A stretch of 63,371 bases of DNA, the filler included, from Octopus bimaculoides (taxonomy: Eukaryota): the NCBI RefSeq assembly GCF_001194135.2. It is 3 parts of 3 records of this genome, joined end to end, with 100 filler letters (N's around TTAATTAATTAA, not from the genome) between each part and the next. Parts side by side here need not be neighbours in the genome. Positions count along the whole stretch, not along the records: positions 1 to 27,056 come from NC_069008.1; 2 more parts are not named here. One strand, given 5' to 3'. Shown piece by piece: positions 2,811 to 25,744 of this stretch (the first letter of the stretch is position 1; each line of letters starts with the position of its first letter). The position numbers and the translations under genes are program-made. The notes under the pieces are model-generated. The model saw nothing but the letters and a program-made list of their open reading frames with translations. It made no database searches and had not been told where the DNA came from.

Positions 2811-2908
2811 GACAGGGGAAATGGCTTTTAATCAACAACGAATCAATCAATGAACTTTCCTCGCCCTTCTTCATTTTTCATTTGGACTTTATATCAAACA
2901 TTCTACTG
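2811..2908 (+). promoter_or_regulatory. 5' UTR exon of ZNF-A containing uORF MAFNQQRINQ* (2821-2853)
   Basis: Acceptor TTTTACAG at 2810, donor GTGAGT at 2909, next acceptor TTTTCAAG at 3028 (18 nt before the ATG); same structure in all four paralogues. Confidence 0.7.
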
Positions 2909-3046
2909 GTGAGTAGAAAATATATCTGCATTGCATCTCTTCCACACATGTAAGCGGTGTTTAGTAATATCTAAGACAAGAAACTGAACCATAATAGATT
3001 ATGTTACAGACGTTTGACAGTTTTCAAGAATTGCTCGAGAATTAAT

Positions 3047-4386
3047 ATGGAGAACGTTGATCACTTGGACACTTGTAACACAATTGTTTTTCACAATATA
3101 GATACTGTCAGAGATGAGAAAGCCGGAAAGAAGAACGTTCTTGAATATCGTTGCGAGATTTGTAGGAAGACATTCCCTTCAGAGCATGAAGTCTTTAAAC
3201 ACAAAGAAATACACAAGAAGCAAAAACGGTTTCATTGTGAAATATGTGGGAAATCGTTTCATAGAAATTGTCATCTTGTGGTACACAAACGTAATCATAC
3301 TGGAGAGAAACCATTCCATTGTGAAATATGCGAAAAAGTTTTTGTTTCTAAGGACACCCTAACAACACACAAAGGAGTACACAGTGAAGAGAAAAGGTTT
3401 CACTGTGAAATATGTGGGAAATCGTTTCACAGAAATTCTCTTCTTGTGAGTCACAAACTAAGTCATACTGGAGAAAAACCTTTCACCTGCGAAATATGTG
3501 GGAAATGTTTTAGTAAGAATTCTCGTGTTGTAGTTCACAAAAGAATCCACACGGGAGAAAAACCATACCAATGCGAAATATGTGGGAAATCTTTTGCTGA
3601 CACTGCTTATCTTGCAGTTCACAGACGTAGTCACACTGGGGAGAAACCATTCCTGTGTGAAACATGTGGCAAGTCTTTTGTTNNNNNNNNNNACACAAAA
3701 GAATACACGCTGGAGAAAAAACATTCCAGTGTAAAATATGTGGGAAGCTGTTTGCTCATAAACAGGGTTTGAAGTCACACAACAGACTACACACTGGGCA
3801 GAAAACTTTCCACTGTGAAATATGTGGGAAATCTTTTTATGATAATGCTCATCTTGTGGTTCACAGACGTTATCATACAGGTGAAAGACCATTCAACTGT
3901 GAAATATGTAAGAAATCTTTTGTCACAAAAAGAGATTTAACATCACACATTAAAATACACAGGGGAGAAAAACCATTCCAATGTGAAATTTGTGAGAAAT
4001 ATTTTGTTACTAGTTATGTCCTAAAAAGACATAAAAGAATACATACCGGAGAGAAACCTTACCATTGTGAAATATGTGAGAAACCATTTTGCAGCAGAGG
4101 TTCATTAGCACAACACAGAACAGTACACACTGGGGAAAAACCTTTCCATTGTGAAATATGTGGGAAATGTTTTGCTTCTAAAGGCGTTTTAAAGAGACAT
4201 ATCAGAACACACACAGGAGAGAAACCGTTCCACTGTGAAATATGCGGATCATCTTTCTCTCAGAATTCTTGCCTAATTGAGCACAAGCGTCGCCACACAG
4301 GAGGAAAACCATTCCAATGTGAAATTTGTGAGAAATCTTTTGTGTCTTCTCATAAATTGAAGAATCACCAAAACATTCACTGTTGA
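3047..4386 (+). CDS. C2H2 zinc-finger protein ZNF-A, at least 15 fingers, single coding exon
   Basis: Tandem CxxC-x12-HxxxH units with TGEKPF linkers in ORFs 3014-3772 and 3664-4386. The frame change falls at the 10-N gap (3683-3692); finger geometry needs about 20 nt there, so the shift is probably artefactual. Start MENVDH matches the paralogues. Confidence 0.9.
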
Positions 4387-5003
4387 AGGAAAGTTTTGGA
4401 CTGTGAAATCGTTTTCAAAGTTCTGATCTAGTAATCTGTAAATATTATTAGGAGAAAGATCTGTTTACTGTTTAGTTTTAGTCAGAGACACAATTTTATG
4501 AATCATGGAAAGAAAAATACTGGTATCACACCTACATCAGCATTTATTTGTCCATCTTTGCATGCTAGAATGGGTGAGACAGGTTGTGGATGGCCAGATG
4601 CCACTTTTTGCAATGATTGATCATATTTTCATGGAAGGGTAGAAACGAAGGACACATTTTGTATACTGGTGACAACTACAATGCTATGTCAAGTCAAACA
4701 GACACGTATTCGCGATGAGCTTCCTTCAGTTTCTATCTGTCACATCTACTCACAAAGACTCACTGTTGTGGGCTTATGAAATTACTAGCATACCTGAGCC
4801 GTCAATGACAGGTATCATTGAAATATGTACATGATTAAAGATGCTAATGTGTGTATGAGGATTTAAATGAAAATGCCAAAATAACAAAACAAAAAGTAAA
4901 TATTTTTATTACTCCCCAAATATAAAATATTGTTTACTTTTAATATTTTCAATATTTTGTTGTCAATGATTCACTCATTATTCTACATTTTGTTATTTTC
5001 TAC

Positions 5004-5009
5004 AATAAA
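5004..5009 (+). terminator. Putative polyadenylation signal of ZNF-A
   Basis: AATAAA in a CTACAATAAAT context shared with ZNF-C (14001-14006 minus) and the pseudogene (19353-19358 minus). Confidence 0.55.
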
Positions 5010-5512
5010 TACTTCTTAATATTTCATAAATGTTGTAGATGTTGTTTGTATTGAAATTCACCAAATTAATAGGTATGTTTGCACATGGGTACCCAGCCAG
5101 TATCTGATTGGTATAGGTTCAACTCCCATAGCCTCCTGCTGCCAACCCTTTTCCATCTTATAAGGGTAAATACCCAATTTTCTGCTGTTTTCACAGCTTT
5201 ACTGCTTTTGAAATTTACTTTCTGGTCTGTAAAATACCAATCATATTCGATGCTTCTAAAGTTTGTTTCTAAAAACGTTACATATATTTTCTAAAGCTTC
5301 TCAAGGAACAACAGGTTTAGTTGATGTAAAAGCTGGGCATTTACAACATATTCAACATGTTCCATTCGAAAGCTCCAAATATTTGTGATAAATGTTATTA
5401 TTTATATTAATTGCAGAAGTTCCTGAAGAATAATATTTCTTGTATATATATACATACATTACCTTATTATTTTTCTTACATATATATATATATATACATA
5501 TACATATAGATA

Positions 5513-5547
<35 letters not shown>

Positions 5548-6184
5548 ATGATGATGATATANNNNNNNNNNNNNNNNNNNNNNNNNNNNNNNNNNNNNNN
5601 NNNNNNNNNNNNNNNNNNNNNNNNNNNNNNNNNNNNNNNNNNNNNNNNNNNNNNNNNNNNNNNNNNNNNNNNNNNNNNNNNNNNNNNNNNNNNNNNNNNN
5701 NNNNNNNNNNNNNNNNNNNNNNNNNNNNNNNNNNNNNNNNNNNNNNNNNNNNNNNNNNNNNNNNNNNNNNNNNNNNNNNNNNNNNNNNNNNNNNNNNNNN
5801 NNNNNNNNNNNNNNNNNNNNNNNNNNNNNNNNNNNNNNNNNNNNNNNNNNNNNNNNNNNNNNNNNNNNNNNNNNNNNNNNNNNNNNNNNNNNNNNNNNNN
5901 NNNNNNNNNNNNNNNNNNNNNNNNNNNNNNNNNNNNNNNNNNNNNNNNNNNNNNNNNNNNNNNNNNNNNNNNNNNNNNNNNNNNNNNNNNNNNNNNNNNN
6001 NNNNNNNNNNNNNNNNNNNNNNNNNNNNNNNNNNNNNNNNNNNNNNNNNNNNNNNNNNNNNNNNNNNNNNNNNNNNNNNNNNNNNNNNNNNNNNNNNNNN
6101 NNNNNNNNNNNNNNNNNNNNNNNNNNNNNNNNNNNNNNNNNNNNNNNNNNNNNNNNNNNNNNNNNNNNNNNNNNNNNNNNNNNN

Positions 6185-6223
<39 letters not shown>

Positions 6224-6758
6224 CACACACGTATGTATATATATACATATACGTATATACGCACTCACACACATAAAAGCATATCTACAGATGTGTAACC
6301 CACGCGACTTATTTGCCTCATAACTTCCACAAAAATGGATAGATTGTAACGAAATTTTCAGCAAATACCCGTTACATGCTGTAGATTTAGGGTATATAAG
6401 TATCTGTTGCAAAGAGTTTTCCCGAGTGGTTGGGGAAAAGAGTTTCTAAACTTTCAGGAAAATGAGTATCGTTTAATGAAAGTTTATGCAAATACCTTTG
6501 AAACGGCATAGATTACAATTACAATGAAATTTGTCGGGAAAATCTTTTCCGAGTAAGAGAGATGTTACCAAAATAGATTTTCTTATAAATCCCTATATAC
6601 ACTGAATCTACAGCACCTAAGCTGTATTTGATGAAAATTTCGTTAAGAAGTATTTATTTTTCTGGAAGTTATGAGGCAACAAATTCTGTCTATGTGTGCC
6701 TGGGGGTACACATGTTATGTCCACGAAAATTCGTAACCATGGTACTTACACATGCATA

Positions 6759-7126
6759 CTCTTTTACTTGTTTCAGTCATTTGACTGCGGCTATGCTGGA
6801 GCACCGCCTTTTAGTCGAGCAAATCGACCCCAGGACTTATTCTTTGTAAGCCTAGTACTTATTCTATCGGTCTGTTTGCCGAACCGCTAAGTTACGGGAA
6901 CGTAAACACACCAGCATCGGTTGTCAAGCGATGTTGGGGGGACAAACACAAACACACACATATATACGACAGGCTTCTTTCAGTTTCCGTCTACCAAATC
7001 CAATCACAAGGCTTTGGTCGGCCCGAGGCTATAGTAGAAGACACTTGCCCAAGGTGCCACGCAGTGGGAATGAACCCGGAACCATGTGGTTGGTAAGCAA
7101 GCTACTTACCACACAGCCACTCTTAC
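6759..7126 (-). mobile_element. tRNA-derived SINE (family A), near full length
   Basis: Minus-strand head GAGTGGCTGTGTGGTAAG...GGGTTCA, then CACCTTGGGCAAGTG, a central (CA/TA) tract and an AAAAGAG tail; near-identical copies elsewhere in the window. Confidence 0.85.
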
Positions 7127-7520
7127 ATACACAAAACATAAATATAAGCGATTCATCTGGAAAAAAAAAATGAAAGAAATAAAGACGAACGAAAATTGCC
7201 GAACAAATGTTTTCATTATCTGTCTACCTTCAACGAAAGATATTCAAAAGTATTTCTTTTGAATGGAAAGAGGAGGCTAGGAATTCACAGCGAAAAATAA
7301 ACCAAAACAACGTAATTGGAAAAGCTGTATAATTAGGACTGCACTGCGGAATATCACATTCCGGTTAAAACAGACTGGTGTGATTTGAAGAAGACTTGAC
7401 TGTTATTTCTACAAGACTGAAAGACCACGTAGAGACCCACTCTGGCGGATATGGAGATTGTTTTGTGATATTGGGTACAATCACAAACGTAAATTAATTG
7501 AAGCTGTTTCTGTTGTATTA

Positions 7521-7548
7521 TGTTGGGGACATTTAATATAAGTCACCG
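7521..7548 (+). promoter_or_regulatory. Conserved upstream block of ZNF-B
   Basis: TGTTGGGGACATTTAATATAAGTCACCG, paralogous to 2556-2582. Confidence 0.55.
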
Positions 7549-7757
7549 GTATCATTTAAACGCGGGAAACATTATCATTGGCACCGTCTACTGCGCATGT
7601 TTCTCATTTGGTTGAGTTGAATCTAATTACATTATTTTGTTTTTGTTTGTGGATAAGACAGACTGACACACACGATCGCTGTTCCTTCATCTTCTAGATT
7701 AGATATCTTATTCGATCACAGCTTTATATCGTTAATTGGTTGTTCCCCATTTTACAG

Positions 7758-7834
7758 GGGAAATGGCTTTTAATCAGTCAATGAAAATTCATTGATTCAC
7801 TTTTCAGTTGCTCTTTAAATCAAACGTTCTACTG
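7758..7834 (+). promoter_or_regulatory. 5' UTR exon of ZNF-B containing uORF MAFNQSMKIH* (7763-7795)
   Basis: Acceptor TTTTACAG at 7757, donor GTAAGT at 7835, next acceptor CTTTAAG at 7946 (18 nt before the ATG at 7965). Confidence 0.7.
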
Positions 7835-7964
7835 GTAAGTAGAAAGTATATCTACGTTACATATTTTCCACACAAGTAAATGGAGTCTGTGATATCTGAG
7901 ACAAGAAACAGCTATAATAGAATAACTCCAAGACATATACTTTAAGAATCGCTCGAGAATTAAC

Positions 7965-9341
7965 ATGGCGAACGTTAATCACTTGGACATTTCTAACACG
8001 ATTGTTTTGAGCGATTCAGATACAGTTATAGAGACAGACGGGGATGAGAAAGCTGGAGAGAAAAATGTTCCTGAACATGGCAGTATGGTTTGTTGGGAGT
8101 CATCCTCTTCAGAAGATGAAGTCGTTATAGAAAAAGAAACACCCTGTAAGAAAAGACGGTTTCATTGTGAAATTTGTGGAAAATCAGTGAATGCTAAATC
8201 TTATCTTGTGGTTCACAAACGTTTTCATACAGGAGAAAGACCATTCCATTGCGAAATTTGTGGGAATTCTTTTTTCTCAAAGAGAGATTTAACAAGACAC
8301 AAAACGATACACACTGGTGAAAAACCTTTCCCCTGTGATGTATGTAGAAAGTCATTCTCTCACAGGGACTATCTTGCTGCTCACAAACGTTGTCACACAG
8401 GAGAAAAGCCATTCCAATGTGAAACGTGTGGGAAATCTTTTGTTACGAAAAGAGATTTAACAAGCCACAAAAGAAAACACACGGGGGAAAGACCTTTCAG
8501 TTGTGACATATGTGGGCGATCATTTATTGCTAAAGCGTATGTTGCAGTTCACAAACGTAGTCACACTGGAGAAAGACCTTTCCAGTGTGAAATGTGTGAG
8601 AAATCTTTTGAGTCAGAATGGGATTTAACAAGACACGTAAGAGGTCACACAGGAGAGAAACCATTCCAGTGTGAAGTATGTGAGAAATCCTTTGTTTCTC
8701 GTAGCACTCTAACAACGCACAAAAGAATTCATACAGGGGAGAAACCATTCCATTGTGAAACATGTAAGAAATGTTTTACTTCTAGTGGCACCCTAGCACA
8801 ACACAGGAAAATACACACAGGGGAAAAACTTTTCCATTGTGAAATATGTGGGAAATATTTTGCCCATAAAGCTGATTTGAAGAGACACAAAAGAACACAT
8901 ACAGGAGAAAAACCTTTCAAATGTCAAATCTGCGAGAAGTCTTTCTCTGATAATTCTAGTTTTGCACGTCACAAAAGAATACACACTGGAATAAAACAGA
9001 ATAATTGTGAAACATGTGGGAAATCATTTCTTAATAGATCTCATCTTGTTGCTCACTATCGTATTCACACAGGAGAACGACCATTCCAGTGTGAAACATG
9101 TGGGAAAGCCTTTGGTACTCGTACTGATGTAAAAATACACAAAAGAATACACACTGGAGAGAGACCTTACCATTGTGAAATATGTGGGAAATCTTTCGTT
9201 CAGAATTCTACACTCTATGTCCACAAACGTCGCCATGCAGGAGAAAAACCATTCCATTGTGAAATATGTGAGAAATCTTTTGTGTTTTGCGGTGAATTAG
9301 GGAATCACAAAAGGATTCACCATGGAGAACCTTCCCACTGA
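7965..9341 (+). CDS. C2H2 zinc-finger protein ZNF-B, 14 fingers plus a degenerate N-terminal finger, 458 aa
   Basis: Intact gap-free ORF with 14 canonical C2H2 units and TGEKPF/TGERPF linkers; short acidic N-terminus homologous to the paralogues. Confidence 0.95.
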   Translation: MANVNHLDISNTIVLSDSDTVIETDGDEKAGEKNVPEHGSMVCWESSSSEDEVVIEKETPCKKRRFHCEICGKSVNAKSYLVVHKRFHTGERPFHCEICGNSFFSKRDLTRHKTIHTGEKPFPCDVCRKSFSHRDYLAAHKRCHTGEKPFQCETCGKSFVTKRDLTSHKRKHTGERPFSCDICGRSFIAKAYVAVHKRSHTGERPFQCEMCEKSFESEWDLTRHVRGHTGEKPFQCEVCEKSFVSRSTLTTHKRIHTGEKPFHCETCKKCFTSSGTLAQHRKIHTGEKLFHCEICGKYFAHKADLKRHKRTHTGEKPFKCQICEKSFSDNSSFARHKRIHTGIKQNNCETCGKSFLNRSHLVAHYRIHTGERPFQCETCGKAFGTRTDVKIHKRIHTGERPYHCEICGKSFVQNSTLYVHKRRHAGEKPFHCEICEKSFVFCGELGNHKRIHHGEPSH

Positions 9342-9433
9342 AAGATAATAAATCCCTTTCTTTGGAGAACATTTTATGACGATGAAATTGTTAGAAACCA
9401 TTCTAGTCTTGTAATCCACAAATACCACCTGTT

Positions 9434-9736
9434 TATAGGGCTTTCCTATAAGTAGGTTATCTCCCTTGGCTAGGCGGCGCTCTATGTAGACAAACTTCCG
9501 CAGACTATCCACGCTATTGTTATTGTTTCGATGATTCAGCTATCGAAGTATTTACTGTGCCTAAGTTAAAGAAATATTTAAGATTATATGGACAGTATGT
9601 TACTGGAAGAAAGGCGGACTTGACTGAAAGGTATAAAAATTCTGCGGAAGTTAAAGCAAGTCACTGAGCATGCGTACATGTCATACGGGAGAGTTCCAAT
9701 CAGGGTTGGATAACAACCTTATAGGAACCCCCTATA
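9434..9736. mobile_element. Small TIR element carrying a SAP-domain coding remnant, inserted in the ZNF-B 3' UTR
   Basis: Imperfect TIRs TATAGGGCTTTCCTATAAG...GTTATC / GATAAC...CTTATAGGAACCCCCTATA; the plus frame 9545-9667 encodes EVFTVPKLKKYLRLYGQYVTGRKADLTERYK; absent from the homologous UTR of ZNF-A and the pseudogene. Confidence 0.6.
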
Positions 9737-11204
9737 CAGAGACCCCATTTCATGAAGCACAATGAGAAAAATACAGGTGTCAGACCTTCATCAGCATTTT
9801 TATGTCCACCTACCTTTGAGTGGGTCAAATGGAATATGGTGAAGCAGAGACTATGGCTAGATGCTGCTCTTTCCAAGTAATATTCCCCTTTGACTAGTCA
9901 TGTTTTTATGCTTGTATACCAGTGATACTTGCTTCATGCAATGTCAAGCTATGGAAACAGATACGTTTATATATTTGATGGGCTTCGATCAGTTTTTGTC
10001 TATCAAATCCACTCCTTTGGATGGACTTTACTAATTATCGTAAACATGACAGATTGTTGTCATATTTATTATAAACAAAGGCACAAAATTTTTCTCAGTA
10101 TTCAATATTTAGAGAGATTTTTCTATAGAGGATATCTATTACTGATACAGGATAGAAAAGCATCTAAATTGTGGTGTTACTGTTGAAATATTAAATCTAT
10201 GCTAAGACGGGCATTCATTTAAGTGGGACCTCTTCACCTTACCTGGTCTTTCACTTTTTTTTTAACTATATGAAATTCAAAGTCTTTATTGAAATGAAAA
10301 AAAAAAAAATTAAGTTGCTAAAACTGTTTGGAGAGCATAAAAAGCAAACTTATTAATGAAATCATAAACAAACAAGAACATTCAATCTAAAAAGCAAAGT
10401 TTTCATTTCTTTGTAATACTAATGATCCAGCAAAATAAGAAATTTATGAAAAAGTTGTCTTTCAAATTTGTGATAAAATATTTTTTGTCAATTTAAATAT
10501 TTTGTTAAAAATCTTGTGAATTTTGAAATTAAAATGTTTGAATTAAAATATTTGTTGGTTTATATATTTTTTTCAGATTTGATTGACCACAAAAAAATTT
10601 TATTGGGTGATATGCTGTGATTGAGAAGAGCTGTTGAACCAAGTGGGGCCAATGCCAGTGCCATCTGAGTGGCACATCTGCTGGTGACATGCAAAAAGCA
10701 TTGCACAGGCATTGGGCCTCATGGAGGCAGTGACCAAGACCCTTGGTGATATACTGTGCTTGTGGTGACCAGTCAAGCCAAGTGAGATCGTAGTCGTGGC
10801 TGATACCAGTGTCAGGTTAATGGCATGTTAAAAACACCTACTCCACTCTTGGAGTGGTTGGCGTTAGGAAAGGCATCCAGCTGTAGAAACCTTGTGAAAT
10901 CAGATTGGAACCTGGCACAGCCTCCCAGTTTTCAGTCAAACTGTCCAACCCATGCCAGCATGGAAAGTGGACATTAAATGATGATGATACCACCATTGCA
11001 CTGGTTAATGTCTTCCAATCACTGAAAGAGATGAAATATACTCCCTGCTCTTCCCACTTCCCTTTCAATCCAGATTGGTGGGTGCATACCCTCCAATCTA
11101 TTTTTTCAACTCGAAACATTAAAAACGAATTTGTTGATATTCTAGGACAGTCCTCATCCAAGCACAGTTGCAAATAAAGACATTCTAGTCATGACCATCT
11201 AGAC

Positions 11205-11300
11205 CAGTGGTTCTCAACCTTTTTTAACTTCGGGCCCACTTTTTATGATCAAAAAATCCCAGGCCCACTGGCCTCTAAACCAGTTATCTGACCCTCTTCC
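11205..11300 (+). mobile_element. hAT (Charlie-like) MITE end fragment
   Basis: CAGTGGTTCTCAACC terminus preceded by TCTAGAC, the typical target of Charlie-type hAT elements; other end not found. Confidence 0.4.
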
Positions 11301-11415
11301 AGAACATAAAAGCCCCATAAAAGAAGTAATTGTTTCCATGTGCCAGATTCATGTGCGGGTACAATCACAGTCAGTAAATAAATACCACATCAGTGTTATA
11401 ATATCTTGTTTATGA

Positions 11416-11625: not shown

Positions 11626-11642
11626 CTTCTTGTTTATGGAAC

Positions 11643-12704: not shown

Positions 12705-13173
12705 GGAAGGCCAACTGGGAAGATAGTTTTTGTATGTGGCAGATGCTCAACAGTAATAAACACTGTGAATGTGCAGAAAACAACCTTTGCCACATTCCAG
12801 GGAGAAAAACTAGTAGTTGATAGCTTCCGTTACCTAGGTGACCAAGTTAGTATTGGGGGAGGGTGCGCTGAAAGTGTAGCTGCTAGAATAAGAATAGCCT
12901 GGGCAAAGTTCAGAGAGCTCTTACCTTTGCTGGTGACAAAGGGCCTCTCGCTCAGAGTAAAAGGCAGACTGTATGACGCATGTGTACGAACAGCCATGCT
13001 TCATGGCAGTGAAACATGGGCCTTGACTGCTGAGGACATGCGTAAGCTCGCAAGGAATGAAGCCAGTATGCTCCGATGGATGTGTATACTCGACAGAGTG
13101 TAGGTACCTTGAGAGAAAAGTTTGACCTAAGAAGCATCAGTTGTGGTGTGCAAGAGAGACATGTGGTGAGAAT
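12705..13173 (+). mobile_element. RTE-clade LINE reverse-transcriptase C-terminal fragment
   Basis: DSFRYLGDQVSIGGGCAESVAARIRIAWAKFRELLPLL...KGRLYDACVRTAMLHGSETW is a typical RTE RT/thumb sequence; runs into an N gap. Confidence 0.85.
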
Positions 13174-14006: not shown

Positions 14007-14215
14007 GTAGAAAATAACAAAATGTAGAAGAATGAGTGAATCATTGACTACAAAATATTGATCATATTAAAAATAATCAATTCTGTGTTTGGGGAATTAT
14101 AAATTGTTCTCCAAAGAAAGGGGTTTATCATATCTTACATTTGAAAGGTTTCCCTCCAGAATAAATCCTTTCCTCATTCATTAATTCACAAGACTCAAAA
14201 AATTTCTCATATATT

Positions 14216-15583
14216 TCACAATGGAATAGTATGTCCTCCTGTGTGACGACGTTTGTGGTCAAGTAGACAAAATCTCTGAGTAAAAGATTTTCCACATATT
14301 TCACAGGGGAAAGGTCTTTCTAGAGTGTGTACTGTTTTGTGTGTTTTCAGGTCGCTACTTGGAGCAACAGAATTTCCATATATATCACATTGGAATGGTT
14401 TCTCCCCAGTGTGACTTCGTTGATGAACTACAACCTCAAATTTATACAGAAATGCTTTCCCACACATTTCACAGTGGAAGGGTTTTTCTCCTGTATGTAT
14501 TCTTTTATGTGTCCGTAAAGCATTACTAGCTGTAAAACATTTCCCACATATTTCACAGTGGAAGGGTTTTTCTCCTGTATGTGTTCTTTTATGTGTCTGT
14601 AAATAACTATTAGAGGTAAAACATTTACCACATATTTCACAGCTGAAGGGTTTTTCTCCTGTATGTGTTCTTTTGTGTCTCTTTACATCACTATCAGAGG
14701 TAAAACATTTCCAACATATTTCACAGTGGAAGAGTTTTTCTCCTTTATGTGTTCTTTCATGTCTCTTTGCATCAATATCAGCAGTAAAACATTTCCCACA
14801 TATTTCACAGTGGAAGGGTTTTTCTCCTGTATGTGTTCTTTTATGTGTCTGTAAATTACTATTAGAGGTAAAACATTTCCCACATATTTCACAGCTGAAG
14901 GGTTTTTCTCCTGTATGTGTTCTTTTGTGTCTCTTTACCTCACTACCAGAGGTAAAACATTTCCCACATATTTCACAGCTGAAGGGTTTTTCTCCTGTAT
15001 GTCTTCTTTTGTGTCTCTTTACATCTCTATCAGAGGTAAAACATTTCCAACATATTTCACAGTGGAAGGGTCTTTCTCCTGTATGTGTTCTTTTATGTGT
15101 CTGTAAATAACTATTAACGGTAAAACATTTCCCACATATTTCACAGCTGAATAGTTTTTCTCCTGTATGTGTTCTTTTATGCTTCTGTAAATTACTATTA
15201 GAGGTAAAACATTTCAGACATATTTCACAGTGGAAGGGTCTTTCTCCTGTATGTGTTCTTTTATGTGTCTGTAAATTACTATTAAAGGTAAAACATTCCC
15301 CACATATTTCACAGCGGAAAGGTTTTTCTCCTGTATGTATTCTTATATGTGTCTTTAAAGTAGCATTAGTGCTAAAACATTTGCAACATATTTCACAACG
15401 GAACCGTTTTTCTTCTTTGTGTATTTCTTTCTGCGAGAAGTCTTCATCTTCTGAAGAGAATGTCTTCCTATAAATCTCACAGCGATATTCAGGAATACTT
15501 TTGTCTTCAGCTTTCTCATCTCTGTCTGTCATTCTAACTGCATCTTCATTCTTAAAAGTGTCCGAATCATTAATGTTCTCCAT
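14216..15583 (-). CDS. C2H2 zinc-finger protein ZNF-C, 13 canonical plus 2 degenerate fingers
   Basis: Intact ORF; true start MENIND at 15583 lies 18 nt after the conserved acceptor (AG at 15603-15602); the central fingers are near-identical 84-bp repeats. Confidence 0.93.
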   Translation of the reverse strand: MENINDSDTFKNEDAVRMTDRDEKAEDKSIPEYRCEIYRKTFSSEDEDFSQKEIHKEEKRFRCEICCKCFSTNATLKTHIRIHTGEKPFRCEICGECFTFNSNLQTHKRTHTGERPFHCEICLKCFTSNSNLQKHKRTHTGEKLFSCEICGKCFTVNSYLQTHKRTHTGERPFHCEICWKCFTSDRDVKRHKRRHTGEKPFSCEICGKCFTSGSEVKRHKRTHTGEKPFSCEICGKCFTSNSNLQTHKRTHTGEKPFHCEICGKCFTADIDAKRHERTHKGEKLFHCEICWKCFTSDSDVKRHKRTHTGEKPFSCEICGKCFTSNSYLQTHKRTHTGEKPFHCEICGKCFTASNALRTHKRIHTGEKPFHCEMCGKAFLYKFEVVVHQRSHTGEKPFQCDIYGNSVAPSSDLKTHKTVHTLERPFPCEICGKSFTQRFCLLDHKRRHTGGHTIPL

Positions 15584-15698
15584 ATAAATTCTTGAGGAAT
15601 TCTTAAAAAGTGGGTAAATTGTCAGTTCCTTGTCTTTGATATCAAAGACCTGTTTATATGTATGGAGCAAATGTAATGAAGTTATATTTTCTACTCAC

Positions 15699-15797
15699 CA
15701 GTAGAATGTTTGATATAAAGTCCAAATGAAAAGTGAAGAAGTATGAGAAAAGTTCATTGATCGATTTGTTTATCCGTTAAAAGCCATTTCCCGCGTC
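15699..15797 (-). promoter_or_regulatory. 5' UTR exon of ZNF-C containing uORF MAFNG* (15787-15770)
   Basis: Acceptor TTTTACAG (15799-15798), donor GTGAGT (15698); paralogous to the ZNF-A, ZNF-B and ZNF-D exons. Confidence 0.7.
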
Positions 15798-16021
15798 CTG
15801 TAAAATAGGGAACACCAATGATCAAACGAAATATTTAATCACGAAAGTGTTGTAACACAGACCCTGAAACACGTAGCTTGCCCCGTCTTATAGACAAACA
15901 TTAACATTCACCTTGACACGAGATAATTACTACAAATAATATAATTAGATGCGCTCAACTAATTCGAAACAAGTACAATAGGCGGTGTCATGGATATTCT
16001 TTCCCTTCGTCTAAACGTTGT

Positions 16022-16049
16022 CGGTGACATATATTCAAAATCCCCAACA
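16022..16049 (-). promoter_or_regulatory. Conserved upstream block of ZNF-C
   Basis: TGTTGGGGATTTTGAATATATGTCACCG on the minus strand. Confidence 0.55.
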
Positions 16050-16109
16050 CATAATATGACAAACGTCCAATTATATAAATTTATGTTTTTAATTGTATGC
16101 AGCATAAGG

Positions 16110-16884: not shown

Positions 16885-18895
16885 TGTTACACGTTTATAT
16901 CTATGTGTATGCGTAGGTATACGTATATATGAATACATCCCCACTAGTAGTACTATTTTGTTAAGCACATCTACTAAGTAGTATGAACTGTGTCTGAGGC
17001 AGATACGCACAGTGTGTATCACTCCGCTATACATATACTGTTTGTGTAACATGCCAAGTAAATAAACATGTAGAATCATAGTAATGTCTTCAGTGAGTTG
17101 TTTATTATCCTAACACAAAGCAAAAGAATACATAACATGGTAGCAGCGATAAATACATAATCGATAACCGTGCCTTTACAATAAACCAGAAATTTAACAA
17201 ACTGAATATCGCTTCGTCTTCGGACACACACACACGAGGATCCGAAATGGTGGCCCCCGTCGCTGTACAGATGAAATGTCCTGCATTCGATACACACTGC
17301 AAAGCATGTGGAAAGTCCAACCACTGGGAAAAAATGTGTAGACTAACAAAATCTTACAAATACAAGCCCCAATTTTCAAAGAGGAACTTTAAGAGAAGTC
17401 AAAGAGATATAAATGTACATGAGATGGGAAATGACAACCAGAAAACAAAAAAATGAGGCGTATACAACAATACAAATTCAAAAGAAGTCAGGCAAGAAAC
17501 GAACATACATTGACTTGAAGCTAAAGATTGACACTGGAGCCCAAAGTGATATCTTACCTGTCAACCTCTACAAAAAGATGATACAAGAGGATAAGGTCAA
17601 AGAAGGAATCCTCACACTAAGTGATGTAATCCTCACTGCATTCGGAGGTCCCAGGATTCCACAACTGGGCAAAGCAACCATCACAGGGACACACAGACGA
17701 AAAATAATCAAGTGTTCTTTTTATGTCACAAAAACAGAAGGACCTGCAGTTCTTGGACTCGATACCCGTCAAAAACTTAATACTGTGTCAATCAACAGTG
17801 AAGTGAAAGCAGCTCCAAGCAGGATTGACAGAGATATGCCTATCAAAGACCTCACAAAATCACCAGCCAGACTACAAAGGCCGCAGTTGAGGCTCCAAAA
17901 ATACGACAACAATATCAGGTACAAACCAGCAAAGAACCTGATATTGGCAGATGCTCTTTCCAGACTGTCCTCACATGATAAACAGGAGATGGAAGGACTA
18001 AGTGTAAAGGTCCACCACATTGTAAATGTGACAAACACAAAGCTGGAACAAATAAAAGAAGAGACCAGCAAAGATGAAGAACTCCAGCTCCTTACTCAGA
18101 TGGTGATTCAGGAGTGGCCAGAGAAGAGACATCAGGTGCAACCCCTCATTCGTGAATATTGGGCCATCCATGATGGCATAGCAGTGGAGAAAGGAATCCT
18201 GATGGCTGGATCCCGAATAATTATGCCCAAATCAATGCAAAAAGAAATTCTTGAAAAGATCCACCAAGGGGCATCTGGGAATGGAAAAATGCAAACTCTG
18301 AGCCAAGTCAGCTGTGTATTGGGTAGGCATGTATAAAGAGATAGAGAAGATGGTTTCTGCATGTCACATCTGTCAAAAGTACAGGAACACACAGCAAAAA
18401 GAGGAAATGATATCCAGTGACATTCCAAGAAGGCCATGGCAAACTATTGGAGTAGATCTGTTCACAGAGAACCAAGAATGATACTTGATAATGGTCTGCT
18501 ACTACTCCAAATTTGTGAGAAAAGTGAAAGACCTGAGAGCCAAAACAATAACTACAGTGGCTCGAGGATTTGTAGCAGAGCAAGGAATACCAGAGCAGAT
18601 CATGTGAAAGTGGAACCCAGTTCACATCTCAGGAATTCAAAAAAAGCTAGCTGATGAGTATGGGTTCAACATTGTAACCTCATCTCCACACTACCCCAAA
18701 GGTCATGGATTCATAGAAAGACAGGTGCAAACAGACAAGAGAACATTAATCAAATGCCGAGAAACCAAGGAAGAGCCACACCTGGCATTTCTGTCCCTTC
18801 AAGCTGACATGAAGTCCCCAGCAGAAATGCTGAATGACAGGAAATTTAAAACCACCCTGCCAACTAAGATCCAACCTCCTATTGACCAGGAAGAG
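16885..18895 (+). mobile_element. Degenerate Ty3/gypsy LTR retrotransposon, RT/RNase H deleted, 3' truncated
   Basis: 5' LTR TGTTA...TAACA (16885-17137, contains AATAAA); PBS-like TGGTAGCAGCG (17138-17148, near-complementary to tRNAi-Met); gag CKACGKSNHWEKMC (17298-17339); protease IDTGA (about 17530); integrase HHCC and core (W..IGVDLF, YYSKF, SSPHYPKGHGFIER) with stops and frameshifts. Confidence 0.85.
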
Positions 18896-19233
18896 ACTGT
18901 AAAATGGTATGAAAGTTGTCGTAGTAGTCATAGAGACGTTTGTCTTTCTCTATCAGCTTTCAACAGCATGATGATTGAAGAGACATCAGAACAATTAACA
19001 ACATATTAAAAAGGTTTTATTTATGACTATGATGCTTGGTTTCACAATTCCTGTCATTTTGCTTAGCTGCTGCTGATTAATTTGTAGTTTGGTAATGGAA
19101 GGTTAAGGGCTTCCTTGATGCCTGCCAGAGAACAGTGTAAGAGTGCTTCGTGGAAGAGCTAGGTGTTGTCACGTAGGTCTGAGCTCAACTCACCGAGAAA
19201 TTGAAACTAATTGCTTAAGTACGAGTTTTACTA

Positions 19234-19310
19234 TGCATGCGCAACTCGAGGGGCTTCCGGTGGTGAAGTCCTCTGCGCATGCGCAGAATAGTACTACCTC
19301 AATGGCGGCT
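19234..19310 (+). promoter_or_regulatory. CpG-rich promoter-like motif cluster
   Basis: Perfect palindrome TCTGCGCATGCGCAGA (19272-19287, NRF1-type), second TGCATGCGCA (19234-19243), CTTCCGG (ETS-type) and ATGGCGGC (YY1-type, 19302-19309). Confidence 0.4.
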
Positions 19311-19352
19311 ATAATTTCACGCCACTGCAAGACAATGAAATATTAAGAAGTA

Positions 19353-19358
19353 TTTATT
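19353..19358 (-). terminator. Polyadenylation signal remnant of the ZNF pseudogene
   Basis: AATAAA within a 3' UTR (about 19340-19560) that is the reverse-complement homologue of the ZNF-A 3' UTR (about 4800-5020). Confidence 0.45.
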
Positions 19359-20283
19359 GTAGAAAACAAAATGCAGAAAAATGTGTGAATCATTGACAAC
19401 AAAATATTGAAAATATTAAAAGTAATCAATCTTTTATAATATTTGGGAAGTAATAAAAATAATTTACATTTTGTTTTGTTATTTTGGAATTTTCATTTAA
19501 ATCTTCATACACACATTAGCATCTTTAATCATGTACAATAATGCCTCAGTCGTTATTGACAGCTTAGTTATGCTAGTAATTACATAAGCCCAGAACAGGG
19601 AGTCTTTCCGAAGACTTGTGAGTAGATGGGACAGATAGAAACTGAAGGAAGCCCAGCGAACATTTGTGTGTTTCACTTTTAATAATAGCATGGTAATTGT
19701 GTCACTGGTATGCAAGAAGTGTCCTTCGTGAAAATATTACCAATCATGGGTTGGATGGTTTGACCAGGGTTGGTAAGCAGGAAGGCAGCATCAGACTCCA
19801 ATCAGATTTGGAAGGGTTTCTCTGACTGGATGCCCTTCCTAACACCAACCACTCTGGGAGTGTAATTATTTGGGAAGAGTGGCACCTTACCACAGAGATT
19901 GATGCAACAAATTCTATCTGACCCAGTCTACTGATGAATGTCTCGCATTTGTATTTTCCTCATCACGATTCATGAAATTGTGTCTCAGTCTGAAAATTAA
20001 CAGTGAACATATCTATCTCCGGATGGTATTTGTGGATTACAAGAAGAGAAGAGAGAATGGTTTCTAACATGTGTCACCATTTTATGTTGGGATTAGGAAA
20101 GGCATCCAGCCATAGAAACCAGGCCAAAACAAACAACTGGAGCCTGGTGCAGTTCTCCGGCTTGCCAGCTCCAGTCAAACCGTCCAACCCATGCCAGCTT
20201 GGAAAATGTAACATTAAATATTGGTGATGATTCACTGTCATAAAATGTTCTCCAAAGAAAAGGGTTTATCATATCTTATACCT

Positions 20284-20731
20284 AAAAGGTTTCTCTCCAG
20301 AATGAATCCTTTTCTCATTCATTAATTCACAAGACTCAAAAGATTCCTCACATGTTTCACAATGGGATGGTATTTCCTCCTATGTGACGACATTTGTGGT
20401 CAAGTAGACTACCACTCTGAGTAAAAGATTTTCCACATATTTTGCAGTGGAAAGGTCTTTCTCCAGTGTGTACTCTTTCCTGTGTTCTCAGGGTAATACT
20501 ACAAAAGAACTGCCACATATTTCACATTGGAATGGTTTTTCCCCAGTGTGACTTCGTGTATGAACTACAACCTCAAATTTATGAAGAAATGCTTTCCCAC
20601 ATATTACACAATTATTGTTTTTTTCCGGAGTGTAATTTTTGAGGCGTGCACGAGAAGATTGATCAGAGAATGATTTCCCATATATTTCACAGTGGAAGGG
20701 TTTTTCTCCTGAATGTATTCTTTTGTCTCTT
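20284..20731 (-). pseudogene. C2H2 zinc-finger pseudogene (3' portion), paralogue of ZNF-C and ZNF-B
   Basis: Finger remnants ([57 protein letters not shown]) with Cys loss, frameshifts and a premature stop; the 5' part is lost in an N gap. Confidence 0.8.
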
Positions 20732-20831
20732 NNNNNNNNNNNNNNNNNNNNNNNNNNNNNNNNNNNNNNNNNNNNNNNNNNNNNNNNNNNNNNNNNNNNN
20801 NNNNNNNNNNNNNNNNNNNNNNNNNNNNNNN

Positions 20832-21193
20832 GTATGTGTGGTGGTAATGATGTTGACTGGTGTGTGTTGTTTGAAAAGGTACGCTTTCTCAGACGGTCGA
20901 CAGACACAATTTCTGTACGAACATTAGCGTCGACCTTGAAGAAATTCAACCCAAGACTGCGGGTTGCGAGGCGTGTAAGGAACCCTTAAATTGCCTATGA
21001 AAACGCTCAACCATTCCATTAGAAGCGGGATAGTAGCTGTTGGTGCGTATCAGAAGAGAGAAATTGGATAGGGCGTCTATTTGAGAGGTACCGTTGGTGG
21101 CATTGCTGAAAAATGCTGTCGTGAATTCGGAGCTGCGAGCGAAAATGACCAAAAAAAATCCTGTGCAAATGAAGATAAGCCAGTAACTCTTCC
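20832..21193 (-). mobile_element. Ty3/gypsy integrase core fragment
   Basis: RTNSYYPASNGMVERFHRQFKGSL matches the integrase YHPxSNGxVERFHRxLK motif; bounded by N gaps on both sides. Confidence 0.75.
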
Positions 21194-21856
21194 NNNNNNN
21201 NNNNNNNNNNNNNNNNNNNNNNNNNNNNNNNNNNNNNNNNNNNNNNNNNNNNNNNNNNNNNNNNNNNNNNNNNNNNNNNNNNNNNNNNNNNNNNNNNNNN
21301 NNNNNNNNNNNNNNNNNNNNNNNNNNNNNNNNNNNNNNNNNNNNNNNNNNNNNNNNNNNNNNNNNNNNNNNNNNNNNNNNNNNNNNNNNNNNNNNNNNNN
21401 NNNNNNNNNNNNNNNNNNNNNNNNNNNNNNNNNNNNNNNNNNNNNNNNNNNNNNNNNNNNNNNNNNNNNNNNNNNNNNNNNNNNNNNNNNNNNNNNNNNN
21501 NNNNNNNNNNNNNNNNNNNNNNNNNNNNNNNNNNNNNNNNNNNNNNNNNNNNNNNNNNNNNNNNNNNNNNNNNNNNNNNNNNNNNNNNNNNNNNNNNNNN
21601 NNNNNNNNNNNNNNNNNNNNNGATACTTTTACTATGTTCTGGGGTTTTTCTCTCTCACACACACACTTGTGCACTCATATATTTTCTTTCCTTTCAGAAA
21701 CATTGCATGCATGTATCTCACAAGTGTACATTCATTTCTTTGATTTTTCTTTGTGTGTGTTTGTGCCATATCTTGTGGTTGGTTTCAGTGGCCATCTTGC
21801 CTCAGGCGTTCCTCCAATTTTCTATTTTCGTGCGTTCCGCACTAGCAGGGGAGCCC

Positions 21857-22121
21857 TGTAGTAACGCCTTGTCTCGTGCGCATGCGTAGTCATCAATATC
21901 CAAGTTTGGCGCCCTTATTCATTCTCTTTTCCCAGCCGGCCGGCCATGAGCATGGCCGTGTTAAGCTGTCTCTCCAGCATTCCAGCTCTGGGGACAGCTC
22001 ATTCCGACGTCTCAGCAACCATACCCTATTTACCTCCATAAATAAATATTGTTGTGTTGATAGTTCAGAGTTCTGCGTTTCGTTGTTTATTCCGAATTTA
22101 ATATAGGAAAGCAGGTGTACA
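21857..22121 (+). mobile_element. Possible LTR (3' LTR-like)
   Basis: Starts TGTAG just after a purine tract (AGCAGGGGAG), contains AATAAA and ends GTACA; no second copy to confirm. Confidence 0.35.
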
Positions 22122-22289
22122 CTTAATGGTGTATAACCACTTTCCTATAAAAGTGGTGACCCTCCGATGTTGATTCAAACACGCAGCCCAACGTGAAAAG
22201 TTCATATAACCAATTTCCTACAAGACTACACCACCGACTCGTCCATCCTCATTACTTTCTCGACTGACTAAACAAATTGTGTCTGATCC

Positions 22290-23190
22290 AGTCAAATCTA
22301 AATCTAATTGACTCAATTCGAAGGGCTCTTTTGAGGGCATTCCACCACCGGTTGTTGATAACAGCGCCAGTAAGTGCCCTCTTCACTAACTCCTTAATCT
22401 GGCTACGGTAGGCCTCGCAATCCAATAAAGTCTTGTTCAGCTTCCAGTAGCCAAATCCCTGTCTATGTACCTTATCTATATACACCCTACACGTCACTAA
22501 CTTGTGATCTGTGTAGGGTACGTAGGTAAACTGTGGACAACTAAAGCTATGCTTGTCTCTAGTACTTACGACTATCCTGTCTATATAAGACCTTCCCATT
22601 CCGTCGTTTCTTGCCCAGGTCCACACTGGAATGTTCGGGATGTCAAGTTTATATCGATCTGCCAGCCTGAAACGCTTCAGCAGATCGATGAGGCATGAGT
22701 TTCCCTTTCTATCTTTAGAGCCCACGCTATCCTGGTGCGCATCCAGTATAGCGTTAAAGTCACCTAGTACAGCTACTGTTTTCGATGTCACCAGGAAATT
22801 CTCCAGGCGATGAAAGAAACCGACCCGTTTGCCTGCAATACCAGGCGCGTAGATGCCCACCAGCCTGAAAGCCTTGCCACTGTATGTCAGATCCAGAACG
22901 ACGAACTCACCTTCTGGGTCCACGAAGATTGTACGAGTCTGCATGACTAAGCTTTTACGGATCAAGACAGCCACCCCTCTGCTCCCTCCCTCCCGGCTAG
23001 GAGAAATTATTTTCTCGTAGTCATTCAGGAGGGCAGAGAAGGCTTGCAGCTTGTCCAGTCTAGTCTCTGTAACAACCATCACATCTATGCTATGTGACCT
23101 GAGGTCGTCGAGGAGGCACGCCTGCTTCCACTTCGAGCTCAGGCCACGCACATTTAAGCACGCTATGTTCAACACGGCCATTTGCAACAT
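22290..23190 (-). mobile_element. Tx1/L1-clade LINE ORF2, APE endonuclease domain (3' truncated before RT)
   Basis: LNVRGL, VTET, GVAVL, IYAP, GDFNA, YIDRI, TDHKLV and GYWKLN motifs in an open 312-aa frame. Confidence 0.9.
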
Positions 23191-23344
23191 AGAGGAAAAA
23201 CGGGAACCTACTTACCCTCTCATTGTCTTTCCAGGGGAATGGCTCTCAAGACATTTGAAACCACTTCCCTATTTCCTTCTGTTCCTCCTATGAAGGGTAC
23301 CTCCAAGGAGGGGGATCTCGTTCAAAACGGGGGCACCAGTTTTC

Positions 23345-23822
23345 ATTAATGTTTTATGTAGTGTTTTTGGTACCGAAAGACTTTCAAACTTCGTATACTT
23401 ATCTATTTTGTGTTATAGAACAGAAAAAAATTTTTGTATTTGAATTTATTTCATGTAAAAAATTGTCTTATTTCGATAATTTCAACCAATCACTGACAAG
23501 TATTCAGCTGTTTATACTTGCTCCTTTGGAAGTTTAAGCGGTGTAAAGCGTATTTAATCTCCATTTATNNNNNNNNNNATTTCGTTAACATCTGCCTGAA
23601 CTGTATGTGTACAACATTTGCTTTTTTCATTTTCTTTTACGCGTGTTTATTTCGTTAACATTTGCCTGAACTGTATGAAAGGTTTATTAGCTACTGCCTA
23701 ACCCTAACCCTAACCCTACTGCCAATATGCTTCAGCTATCGTTTGTTTACATAGTCAGCACTTAATAATATCCGGCTGAATGGACGTCAGTCATTGGTTG
23801 AAATTACAGAAATACGACAACT
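23345..23822. mobile_element. Non-autonomous element with 33-bp inverted repeats and a (CCCTAA)3 core
   Basis: Inverted repeats 23465-23497 and 23786-23818 (29/33 match); CCTAACCCTAACCCTAACCCT at 23697-23717; lies between LINE ORF1 and ORF2. Outer limits uncertain. Confidence 0.45.
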
Positions 23823-25270
23823 TTAACATGAAATAACTTGCGATGTACGTTTTTTTGTTAAGAAGACTAAGAGAAAAAGATGTTTTATATGACACATTCT
23901 ACCAGTGTCCCAAGTTTCAAAGTGTTTCGTTAAGAAAATACTGATGCCCCCGTTCTGAACAAGATCTAAGGAGGGTTCAACCGACGGGTCGAATACTTTT
24001 TCGAAATTATCTAGTAAGCTTATGCCCTTGGGATGTAATTTGCTCAGATCAAAAGACAGAGTTCTTGCTACCTTTGCTATGACAGTAGGACTCTGATAAC
24101 CATCATTTTTATAAACCAATGAGTCATTATGTGGTCTAATGACCCCATCTAGATAAATGTCTTTTCTACGGTACGAGACCGTCACTCGATCAACTGGTTT
24201 CGGTATTGTTATAGGGATGTCTAAAAGGGCCATTTTTTCCCTTTGTTCTTCCCTGGTTTGGCTACTTTGGTCTTTGGGGTTTCCTGTTTGTTCGGGGACT
24301 CCATCTTCCTCGTCCTCTTCCTCAAACAAACCTGGTACCTGTCTGTTGGTAGTTGCTTTTCTTCTTCACTGTCAGTGATGATCTCATATGATGCGGTCAC
24401 TCTTGGTTGGATGAACTCCTGGTAACGACCTCCGTGTCCGGGAGTTCACCCTCTTTGGTTGATGTCTTTTTGGTTGTAGCTAAGGGTGCATCTTTAGTTG
24501 GTCTTATAAGTGTTGTAACTTTTTGGGGGTTCACTTTGGTTTTTCGATGATCCCCCCTGGGGCATCCTTCCTTCGACATGAATGGAGATACTTATATCGT
24601 CCATTATTATCGTTTCTGGCAGCTCGTTGTGACTTGCGCCAGGATCTCGAGGGTCTGGCCCCGCCAGTTCTGTGGGCCATCTTTTGTTGTCTCTATAATT
24701 TTTAATTTTTCCTCCCTCTTGTATAGCAGGGTGGCCACGATCCAGCCCACCTCCACCTCCGGAGGGGATGTTTTTAATTTTTATTCGGGACGTCCTACGT
24801 CCCAAATATAGTGGCAGTAATAAAATTTTGCCACATTGCAAGGTTCTTGTCGACAGCTCTCTTGCACGCTCTGTCGAATCGAAGCTTGCTTCAATGGCTG
24901 CTAATCTTATTCCTCTGTTTAGATATTTTATGTGGTTCATTATTGCGCCAAGACATTTCTCTATGCAATTCTCCTCCAAGTGTTCAAATCTCTTGGTCTC
25001 CGTGTTGTAAGTTTTATAGATGATAGTTTTCTCTTTGATTTTATTTTGGAATTCACTTGGAGGTGTTATTCTCGATTCACCGTCCTTTTCTAATATCATT
25101 CCGAAGAATGCCTGGATTTCCTCCACTTTCAATTTTATTTGTTCTCGGCCACCGACGGCCGCAGCAAAATTCATATTTGTGTTTTCTTCCGTGGAAGACA
25201 TTTTTTGAACAAAACAATTTCGTATAACTGAAAAAAATATTTTCAAAAACGGAAACACAGTCCAACAAAG
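23823..25270 (-). mobile_element. Tx1-type LINE ORF1 and 5' end (frameshifted)
   Basis: MSSTEENTNMNFAAAV... and LLLPLYLGRRTSRIKIKNIP resemble Tx1 ORF1; same orientation as, and upstream of, the APE ORF2. Confidence 0.6.
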
Positions 25271-25293
25271 GTTATATAACGAACGTTACATTA

Positions 25294-25321
25294 CGTTGGG
25301 GATTTTTAATATATGTCACCG
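25294..25321 (+). promoter_or_regulatory. Conserved upstream block of ZNF-D
   Basis: CGTTGGGGATTTTTAATATATGTCACCG. Confidence 0.55.
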
Positions 25322-25546
25322 ATATCGTTTACAAAGGGGAAAGAATATCACCGACACCGCCTATTGCAAATGTTGAGCTGAACTAATTATAATGATTCGT
25401 AGTAATTATCTCGTGTCGAGGTGAATGTTAATGGATAAGACAGGGCAACATACATGTTTATGGGTCAGTGTTCCATGACCTTCAGGATTAAATATATCGT
25501 TTGATCACAACCTCACATCGCTAAATGTTTGTTCCCGATTCTACAG

Positions 25547-25642
25547 CGCGGGAAATGGCTTTTAATCGACCACAAATCAATCAATGATCTTTTCTCACTC
25601 ATCTTCATTTTTCATTTAGACTTTATATCAAACATTCTACTG
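25547..25642 (+). promoter_or_regulatory. 5' UTR exon of ZNF-D containing uORF MAFNRPQINQ* (25555-25587)
   Basis: Acceptor TTCTACAG at 25546, donor GTGAGT at 25643, next acceptor TTTTTAAG at 25726 (18 nt before the ATG at 25745). Confidence 0.7.
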
Positions 25643-25744
25643 GTGAGTAGAAAATATAACTTCATTACATTTGCTCCACACATATAAACAGAGGTCTTTG
25701 ATATCAAAGATAAGAAACTTTTTAAGAATTCCTCAAGGATTTCT

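Follow-up and report, generated by a model that had tools for sequence, protein, structure and literature searches.

A short upstream open reading frame in the 5′ module of four paralogous octopus C2H2 zinc-finger genes

When four neighbouring genes carry the same short upstream open reading frame (uORF), do they share a selected device of translational control, or a common ancestor? This question is raised by four C2H2 zinc-finger (ZNF) genes of Octopus bimaculoides, here g1 to g4, each preceded by a putative 5′ non-coding exon (E2) in which an ATG in favourable context opens a uORF beginning MAFN. The genes lie in positions 1 to 27,056 of the window (the whole stretch of DNA analysed, 63,371 nucleotides with filler), which were traced to about 15.94–15.97 Mb of the 18.6-Mb chromosome GCA_001194135.2:CM046628.1 (15,942,557–15,969,612), with position 1 at about 15,942,557. 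A first-pass annotation had proposed a translational control module acting across the whole cluster. We hold with moderate confidence that young duplicates instead inherited the entire 5′ module, including the MAFN uORF, which would repress translation moderately by default and would not be a device selected family-wide.

The upstream ATG exon and its surroundings in four copies

The string ATGGCTTTTAA was found exactly four times in a search of the window, at 2821 (+), 7763 (+), 15787 (−) and 25555 (+). All four genes contain a 77–99-nt segment with GGGAAATGGCTTTTAA, a first uORF (uORF1) of 5–10 codons and the consensus donor CTG/GTRAGT (a slash marks a predicted exon boundary), bordered upstream by a pyrimidine tract and ACAG and downstream by CTG/GTRAGTAGAAA. 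The AG at −20/−19 from the main ATG, present in 4/4 genes, would let a third exon (E3) start 18 nt before the start codon, after a putative intron 2 of 84–120 nt, although this acceptor (AAG) is weak. The context of uORF1 is favourable, both −3 and +4 being G in every copy, and the −3 base of the main AUG is A in g1 and g2 and T in g3 and g4. The uORF1 stop lies 57–89 nt upstream of the main AUG in the predicted spliced leader. Its peptides share only MAFN and diverge afterwards in sequence and length, the fourth codon of g3 carrying a synonymous change from AAT to AAC. The anatomy first described for this locus, namely the exon coordinates (Table 1), the peptides, the purine and G context and the AG 18 nt before the main ATG, was thereby confirmed in every copy.

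Alignment revealed that homology among the four genes extends over the whole ~520-bp 5′ module, introns included, at 71–95% identity. It begins ~256 nt upstream of E2 at GTTGGGGA..TTTAATATA.GTCACCG and continues through both putative introns into the coding sequence; DNA further upstream does not align among the four genes, and their 3′ flanks are also paralogous. Pairwise identity was 0.71–0.78 in the upstream 256 nt, 0.77–0.89 in E2 and 0.73–0.95 in intron 2, the value for g3 against g4 intron 2 being 0.95. Because introns and upstream DNA are equally similar, a fixed ATG is expected by descent, and the four exact copies reflect paralogy, not chance. The earlier observation of a fixed start followed by a diverging remainder holds insofar as only MAFN is shared, but it concerns young segmental duplicates. 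When the window and 2 kb of additional flank were searched with a profile of the module, the four copies linked to the genes were the only matches, and the idea of a dispersed repeat was rejected on these grounds.

The longest invariant run in the module is the 16-nt GGGAAATGGCTTTTAA around the upstream ATG (uATG). Next in length are TTCTACTGGT and AGTAGAAA at the donor, and TGTTCCC in the acceptor tract and AAGAAT at the E3 acceptor are among the twelve longest; since these runs fall on predicted splice signals, they support the exon–intron reading. An invariant run of at least 16 nt arose in 8% of column shuffles (P = 0.08), making the uATG block only marginally special in its conservation beyond the flanks. 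Each leader contains 2 ATGs against 1.3–1.75 expected from composition, and the median ATG-initiated open reading frame (ORF) in the window has 13 codons. Thus, a short uORF is a chance outcome in such AT-rich DNA, which both the number of uATGs and the uORF length match.

The status of E2 as an exon was addressed with P0235, an older NCBI database protein model that fuses two tandem genes. Its residues 146–178 (RQGKIAFDQQQINQRTFFSFLHFSFGLYIKHST) align with g1 E2, translated in the frame of uORF1, at 73%. This match ends exactly at the predicted E2 donor, which supports the donor boundary, and the protein resumes in the stretch immediately upstream of the main ATG. In this paralogue the uATG is replaced by Ile and the uORF stop by Arg, and a model of this type can arise only from a copy without the uORF stop, making it a biased sample. 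In P0235 the E3 acceptor lies 26 nt upstream of the ATG, not 18 nt, which may just reflect the need of the predictor for an open frame. The proposed spliced exon of the 5′ untranslated region (UTR) is plausible from the invariant runs on its splice signals, the candidate exon-1 donor found in distant copies and the P0235 donor. Taken together, the sequences suggest that E2 really is a 5′ non-coding exon, probably transcribed, which came down through recent duplication together with its short uORFs. Two other readings were rejected: uORF1 as a decayed N-terminal coding extension, because only in g2 does it share the frame of the main ORF, and spliced-leader trans-splicing at the TTTTACAG acceptor, because a conserved candidate exon-1 donor exists. 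To our knowledge, spliced-leader trans-splicing is not known in molluscs.

All four leaders also contain a second upstream ATG in weak context (tcaATGa), at 2850–2852, 7781–7783, 15757–15755 (−) and 25584–25586, which overlaps the uORF1 stop (AATGA) in g1, g3 and g4. The resulting uORF2 ranges from 4 to 19 codons and ends 17–57 nt upstream of the main AUG; in g1 and g3 it has 19 codons and a stop TG/A created by the predicted E2/E3 splice 17 nt before the main ATG. The E2 donor GT lies in the 4-nt loop of a perfect 7-bp inverted repeat, TTCTACT-GGTR-AGTAGAA, invariant in 4/4 copies except for the loop purine. As RNA, this hairpin was calculated at −7.2 to −8.4 kcal/mol (z −2.8 to −3.8) and could modulate donor use; no covariation was seen, and relatives retain just TTCTA...TAGAA.

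The upstream ATG in relatives outside the window

An exhaustive HMMER search with a 70-column N-terminal profile recovered ten proteins with the whole N-terminus, from O. bimaculoides, O. sinensis and the sequencing run SRR11869391, plus two without an organism name. In the contigs of these relatives, all homologous 5′ modules were then traced by iterated profile searches, about ten further regions (L030 to L035 in Table 1). The ATG was kept in three and mutated in three (L032, L033a and the P0235 paralogue), the exon was absent or truncated in four, and one copy was too degenerate to score. The relatives' uORF peptides read MF-stop, MSFN... or MTNK..., and a second ATG occurs in every E2-bearing copy, yet at non-homologous positions.

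For a count per column, g1 and five relatives were aligned as six lineages and those matching g1 were scored at each position. AAA and TTTTAAT matched in 5–6/6 lineages; the G of the ATG matched in 3/6, and the G of the ATG, the +4 G and the next C in just 2–3/6. The ATG was intact at the aligned site in 3/6 lineages against 5–6/6 for the flanking bases, a small sample in which the uATG was no more conserved across paralogues than its flanks. The strong-context uORF is thus common to the four window copies, but the wider family loses the ATG as often as it keeps it and often lacks the exon. The notion of a cluster-wide translational control module was not supported on these counts, with an ATG less conserved than its flanks and a uATG number and uORF length equal to chance.

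Some 350–550 nt of shared sequence stands, in more distant paralogues, between the 5′ half of E2 and the block ATTCTA..GTAAGTAG; a deletion that joined an old exon start to a new donor may have produced the compact E2 seen in the window. The RefSeq model XP_052833736.1 (L032 10001–12187) links an unrelated coding exon from upstream with an acceptor that lies 55 nt ahead of the ZNF start codon, skipping the promoter block and the E2 homologue, and reflects either a chimeric transcript or an error of annotation.

Three protein searches (N-terminal profile, full-length g2, linker-masked g3) of a collection without the window's own proteins gave, among the matches listed, nothing past the cut-off or generic vertebrate and insect ZNF proteins. 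A scan of metagenome DNA with the donor block gave no match, and one with a finger-coding 19-mer gave unrelated single matches only.

Table 1 Features of the four genes and of related copies
Feature	Position	Strand	Remarks
g1 5′ module: promoter-like block, exon-1 end candidate, intron 1, E2, intron 2, E3 start	2555..3073	+	nhmmer profile; alignment
g2 5′ module; exon-1 donor block gone via 27-nt deletion	7520..7991	+	nhmmer profile; alignment
g3 5′ module	15557..16050	−	profile match
g4 5′ module	25293..25771	+	profile match
g1 promoter-like block GTTGGGGAC-TTTAATATA-GTCACCG: TATA-like motif and GTCACCGG core	2557..2582	+	invariant runs GTTGGGGA, AATATA, GTCACCG
g1 candidate exon-1 3′ end and donor (..GTGTCAAG/GT at 2678/2679)	2660..2680	+	alignment; inferred
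g1 putative E2, 98 nt	2811..2908	+	sequence; P0235 aligns to 2809–2907, stopping at donor
g2 putative E2, 77 nt	7758..7834	+	sequence reading
g3 putative E2, 99 nt	15699..15797	−	sequence reading
g4 putative E2, 96 nt	25547..25642	+	sequence reading
g1 uORF1 MAFNQQRINQ-stop	2821..2853	+	
g2 uORF1 MAFNQSMKIH-stop	7763..7795	+	in frame with main ORF; includes second ATG
g3 uORF1 MAFNG-stop	15770..15787	−	
g4 uORF1 MAFNRPQINQ-stop	25555..25587	+	
g1 uORF2, 19 codons	2850..2908	+	weak-context ATG; stop TG/A formed across E2/E3 junction
g1 perfect 7-bp inverted repeat TTCTACT-GGTG-AGTAGAA	2901..2918	+	donor GT in loop
Donor inverted repeat, other copies	7827–7844; 15706–15689; 25635–25652	+; −; +	
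g1 putative intron 2, 120 nt	2909..3028	+	alternative ACAG acceptor would start E3 26 nt before ATG
g1 main ATG (MENVDHLDT...)	3047..3049	+	NCBI called gene start; conserved N-terminus
g2 single-exon coding sequence, 458 aa, C2H2 array	7965..9341	+	
g3 single-exon coding sequence, 455 aa	14216..15583	−	
g4 main ATG and first 11 codons	25745..25777	+	then assembly gap 25778–26211
L035, O. sinensis			exon-1 donor AAG/GTGAGC kept; E2 start AAAATGTCTTTTAATG (MSFN...); ATG kept (ATGTCTTTTAAT)
L033b, O. bimaculoides	other chromosome		AAAATGTTTTAATC (ATGTTTTAA); two-codon uORF MF-stop; ATG kept
L031 minus-strand copy, SRR11869391		−	AAATATGTTCTAATC; MF-stop, ATG shifted 2 nt
L032	CM046628.1, 12.0 Mb		AAAAAGATTTTAATG; ATG lost (AAG); new ATG 8 nt downstream
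L033a, O. bimaculoides			AAATTGGTTTTTATC; ATG lost (ATT) and E2 donor destroyed; large insertion; coding sequence (493 aa) intact
L030, two genes, O. sinensis			no E2; promoter block, then almost directly 3′ half of intron 2
L031 plus-strand gene, SRR11869391		+	E2 absent
L033c, O. bimaculoides			module without its 5′ half
L034, SRR11869391			degenerate, unscorable
Separated E2 halves	L032 11660–12010; L033 7640–7090 (−), 9440–9850, 15160–15505; L035 9540–9860		
Promoter-like block in relatives	L030 8235–8250, 20660–20670; L031 1050–1076, 1440–1465; L032 11318–11350; L033 7976–7945; L034 164–190		

Probable inheritance by duplication and its rivals

According to the explanation that we favour, the four genes would be young tandem and inverted duplicates of one O. 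bimaculoides C2H2 zinc-finger gene. The ancestor would already have had the ~520-bp module, with a promoter-like block (TATA-like plus GTCACCGG), a non-coding exon 1 ending AAG/GTGAA, a ~130-nt intron, the 77–99-nt non-coding E2 and an 84–120-nt intron ending just before the start codon, and E2 with its two short uORFs would have been copied along with the gene, making the MAFN start common by descent. A good-context uORF of 5–10 codons that ends 57–89 nt before a main AUG captures most scanning ribosomes and permits partial reinitiation. If E2 is in the mature mRNA, moderate repression would follow automatically: most scanning 40S subunits would initiate at the first upstream AUG, translate the short uORF, terminate and reinitiate only partly, and the default outcome would be a moderate, constitutive lowering of ZNF protein output. 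The sequence itself shows the anatomy, the paralogy and how variable the ATG is among relatives; from it we infer splicing, uORF translation and the repressive effect. Several points weigh against this explanation. No invariant run among the four copies is longer than the uATG block, and the positions on either side of it vary strongly, leaving some local constraint possible, not necessarily on the ATG. An ATG at the site or within 2 nt of it persists in distant copies on two chromosomes and in O. sinensis, which exceeds what pure decay might predict. Moreover, several relatives without the ATG or the exon look like decaying genes, with frameshifted or truncated models, so that loss there says little about intact genes, and the sample outside the window is small, at about ten regions.

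It is unlikely, in our judgement, that uORF1 is a selected translational control element of the ZNF cluster, holding output low or making it depend on reinitiation, for example upon eIF2-alpha phosphorylation. Such selection would fit the good context and short length of uORF1 in 4/4 copies, its termination well before the main AUG, the position of the longest invariant run, a start fixed although the peptide diverges, the retention of an ATG at or near the site in L035, L033b and L031, and the synonymous change in the fourth codon of g3. However, the four copies are non-independent, as the near-identity of g3 and g4 in intron 2 indicates, the column shuffle is marginal, and ATG count and ORF length equal chance. 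In addition, the ATG is lost in 3/6 scorable E2-bearing relatives with the exon absent or truncated in 4 others, flanking bases beat the ATG in conservation and, unlike in ATF4, no second uORF overlaps the main ORF. Among the sequences compared we saw no evidence for a selected family-wide regulatory uORF, or for stress dependence or regulation. The same per-column counts, with AAA and TTTTAAT better kept than the ATG's G, the +4 G and the next C, would suit a 16-nt block constrained as a nucleic-acid element, with the ATG incidental; it lies 5–10 nt from the E2 acceptor and could be an exonic splicing enhancer or a protein-binding site. We regard this as improbable, since no known motif was recognised in the block and Rfam gave no match, 3/6 against 6/6 is a weak difference given so few sequences, and AT-rich runs mutate less visibly in AT-rich DNA.

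To the possibility that E2 is a cassette or unused, with mRNAs mostly joining exon 1 to E3 or starting downstream and so seldom carrying the uORF, we attach an equally low probability. The hairpin could limit inclusion, its donor stem being invariant in 4/4 copies; genes without E2 or with a destroyed E2 donor keep intact N-terminal coding sequence, and the RefSeq model P0236 bypasses the E2 homologue. Against this, the E2 donor and acceptor are near-consensus and invariant, P0235 includes E2 and covariation does not support the hairpin, while the weak E3 acceptor would burden either route. Less probable still is the more elaborate scheme in which E2 would be a regulated cassette whose inclusion is set by the donor-loop hairpin, the uORF pair then tuning the output of the young ZNF block. 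Inclusion would add the good-context uORF1 together with a uORF2 that starts on the uORF1 stop and ends across the junction, and, if this were true, splicing and translation would jointly tune the output of the whole young gene block.

Promoter-like block, gene cluster and known systems

The candidate exon-1 donor GTAGTAATTATCTCGTGTCRAG/GTGAA is nearly invariant in g1, g3 (15930–15910 (−)) and g4 (~25400–25425), and AAG/GTGAR is kept in the distant relatives L031, L033a, L034 and L035. In g2 it has been removed by a 27-nt deletion (absent at ~7630), and this gene may use another first exon or be poorly expressed. The promoter-like block consists, in order, of a GTTrGGGAC motif, a TATA-like run and a GTCACCGG-like core, and recurs in copies from O. 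bimaculoides, O. sinensis and SRR11869391, including those without E2. The GTCACCGG core is exact in most family copies, with the variants ACACCGG, TTCACCGG and ATCACCG/ATCACCT. Of the family's non-coding elements this block looks the best conserved, and a transcription factor may bind there.

The g2 protein (window 7965–9341) is encoded on CM046628.1, and look-ups with the g2 and g3 proteins matched their own chromosome only. The main ATGs assigned earlier to g1, g2 and g3 are the start codons of NCBI gene calls. Genes g2 and g3 are single ORFs of 458 and 455 aa with 13–14 fingers, all C2H2 fingers lying in one exon; Pfam detected zinc-finger families only in both proteins and no KRAB- or SCAN-type N-terminal effector domain. 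The N-terminus of about 65 aa was octopod-specific in the searches made. No N occurs in any of the four 5′ modules. A 10-N gap (3683–3692) lies inside the g1 finger array, and the frames on its two sides differ, as expected of an arbitrary gap; about 20 nt (+84k) there would restore one finger in frame. The NCBI g1 model (417 aa) spans it via an artificial 86-nt intron (window 3630–3765). Gap 25778–26211 begins 34 nt after the g4 ATG, and the array at 26212–27053 is not securely tied to g4. The remaining gaps are intergenic; one of 10 N (1109–1118) is flanked by a 79-nt stretch at 100% identity (1030–1108 and 1119–1197), probably an assembly artefact.

Between the genes, a truncated ZNF pseudogene fragment at 20240–20949 (−), broken by gap 20732–20831 and without a 5′ module, has a 3′ end 83% identical to the g3 3′ end and flank (14099–14590). 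Transposable-element debris lies at 22252–23190 (−), 17413–18336 (+), 20946–21190 (−) and 12765–13103 (+); one of its ORFs matches the AP-endonuclease family (Pfam Exo_endo_phos), and further ones resemble, by eye, long terminal repeat (LTR) retrotransposon pol/integrase and a reverse-transcriptase tail. A dispersed repeat of ~150 nt has four copies (2069–2242, 10823–10988, 19745–19864 and 20086–20231). The whole window gave no Rfam match, and ARAGORN found no tRNA.

The presence of C2H2 finger families, and no others, in the g2 and g3 proteins places the window in the known octopus C2H2 expansion (PMC9068888), as one O. bimaculoides cluster within the coleoid cephalopod ZNF expansion (PMC9068888, PMC12513265). 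Both papers are silent on the UTRs, uORFs, exons and promoters of these ZNF genes, and nothing that describes the UTRs or uORFs of ZNF genes in cephalopods came up in our literature searches. The value of the present account is a first description of the 5′ architecture (a promoter-like GTCACCGG block, two short putative introns and putative non-coding exons), new but minor and of modest practical use, and a caution against taking identity among tandem paralogues for a sign of constraint. Were the uORF truly selected across the octopus C2H2 expansion, it would point to a coordinated control, at the level of translation, over a lineage-specific transcription-factor family that ranks among the largest known.

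The human 8q24.3 KRAB-ZNF cluster (PMC2865497) resembles the octopus genes in its 5′ non-coding exon(s), which in octopus are putative, in a single exon for all fingers and in a 5′ architecture common to the paralogues; the octopus genes differ in lacking KRAB and SCAN domains, in an AT-rich TATA-like promoter block in place of a CpG island, and in very short predicted introns. Plant conserved-peptide uORF groups (PMC2075485) likewise lie upstream of transcription-factor genes, but the octopus copies share four residues only and their relatives read MF-stop or MSFN..., so the peptide is not conserved in that sense. Leaders of the GCN4/ATF4 type also carry two uORFs, the first short and reinitiation-permissive, whereas the octopus uORF2 has a weak context, has 4–19 codons, ends before the main AUG with no overlap and is not conserved in position among relatives. 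The closest parallels are the ordinary repressive uORFs of animals, which act through leaky scanning and reinitiation: they too combine a short ORF, a good context, a stop well upstream and an unconserved peptide, and the expected effect, moderate constitutive repression, is alike. The octopus leader, which is predicted from sequence, differs from them in that recent duplication explains the conservation of its uORF. The uORF exon thus adds one more case to a very common class of feature, as an ordinary inherited leader element of one small ZNF subfamily.

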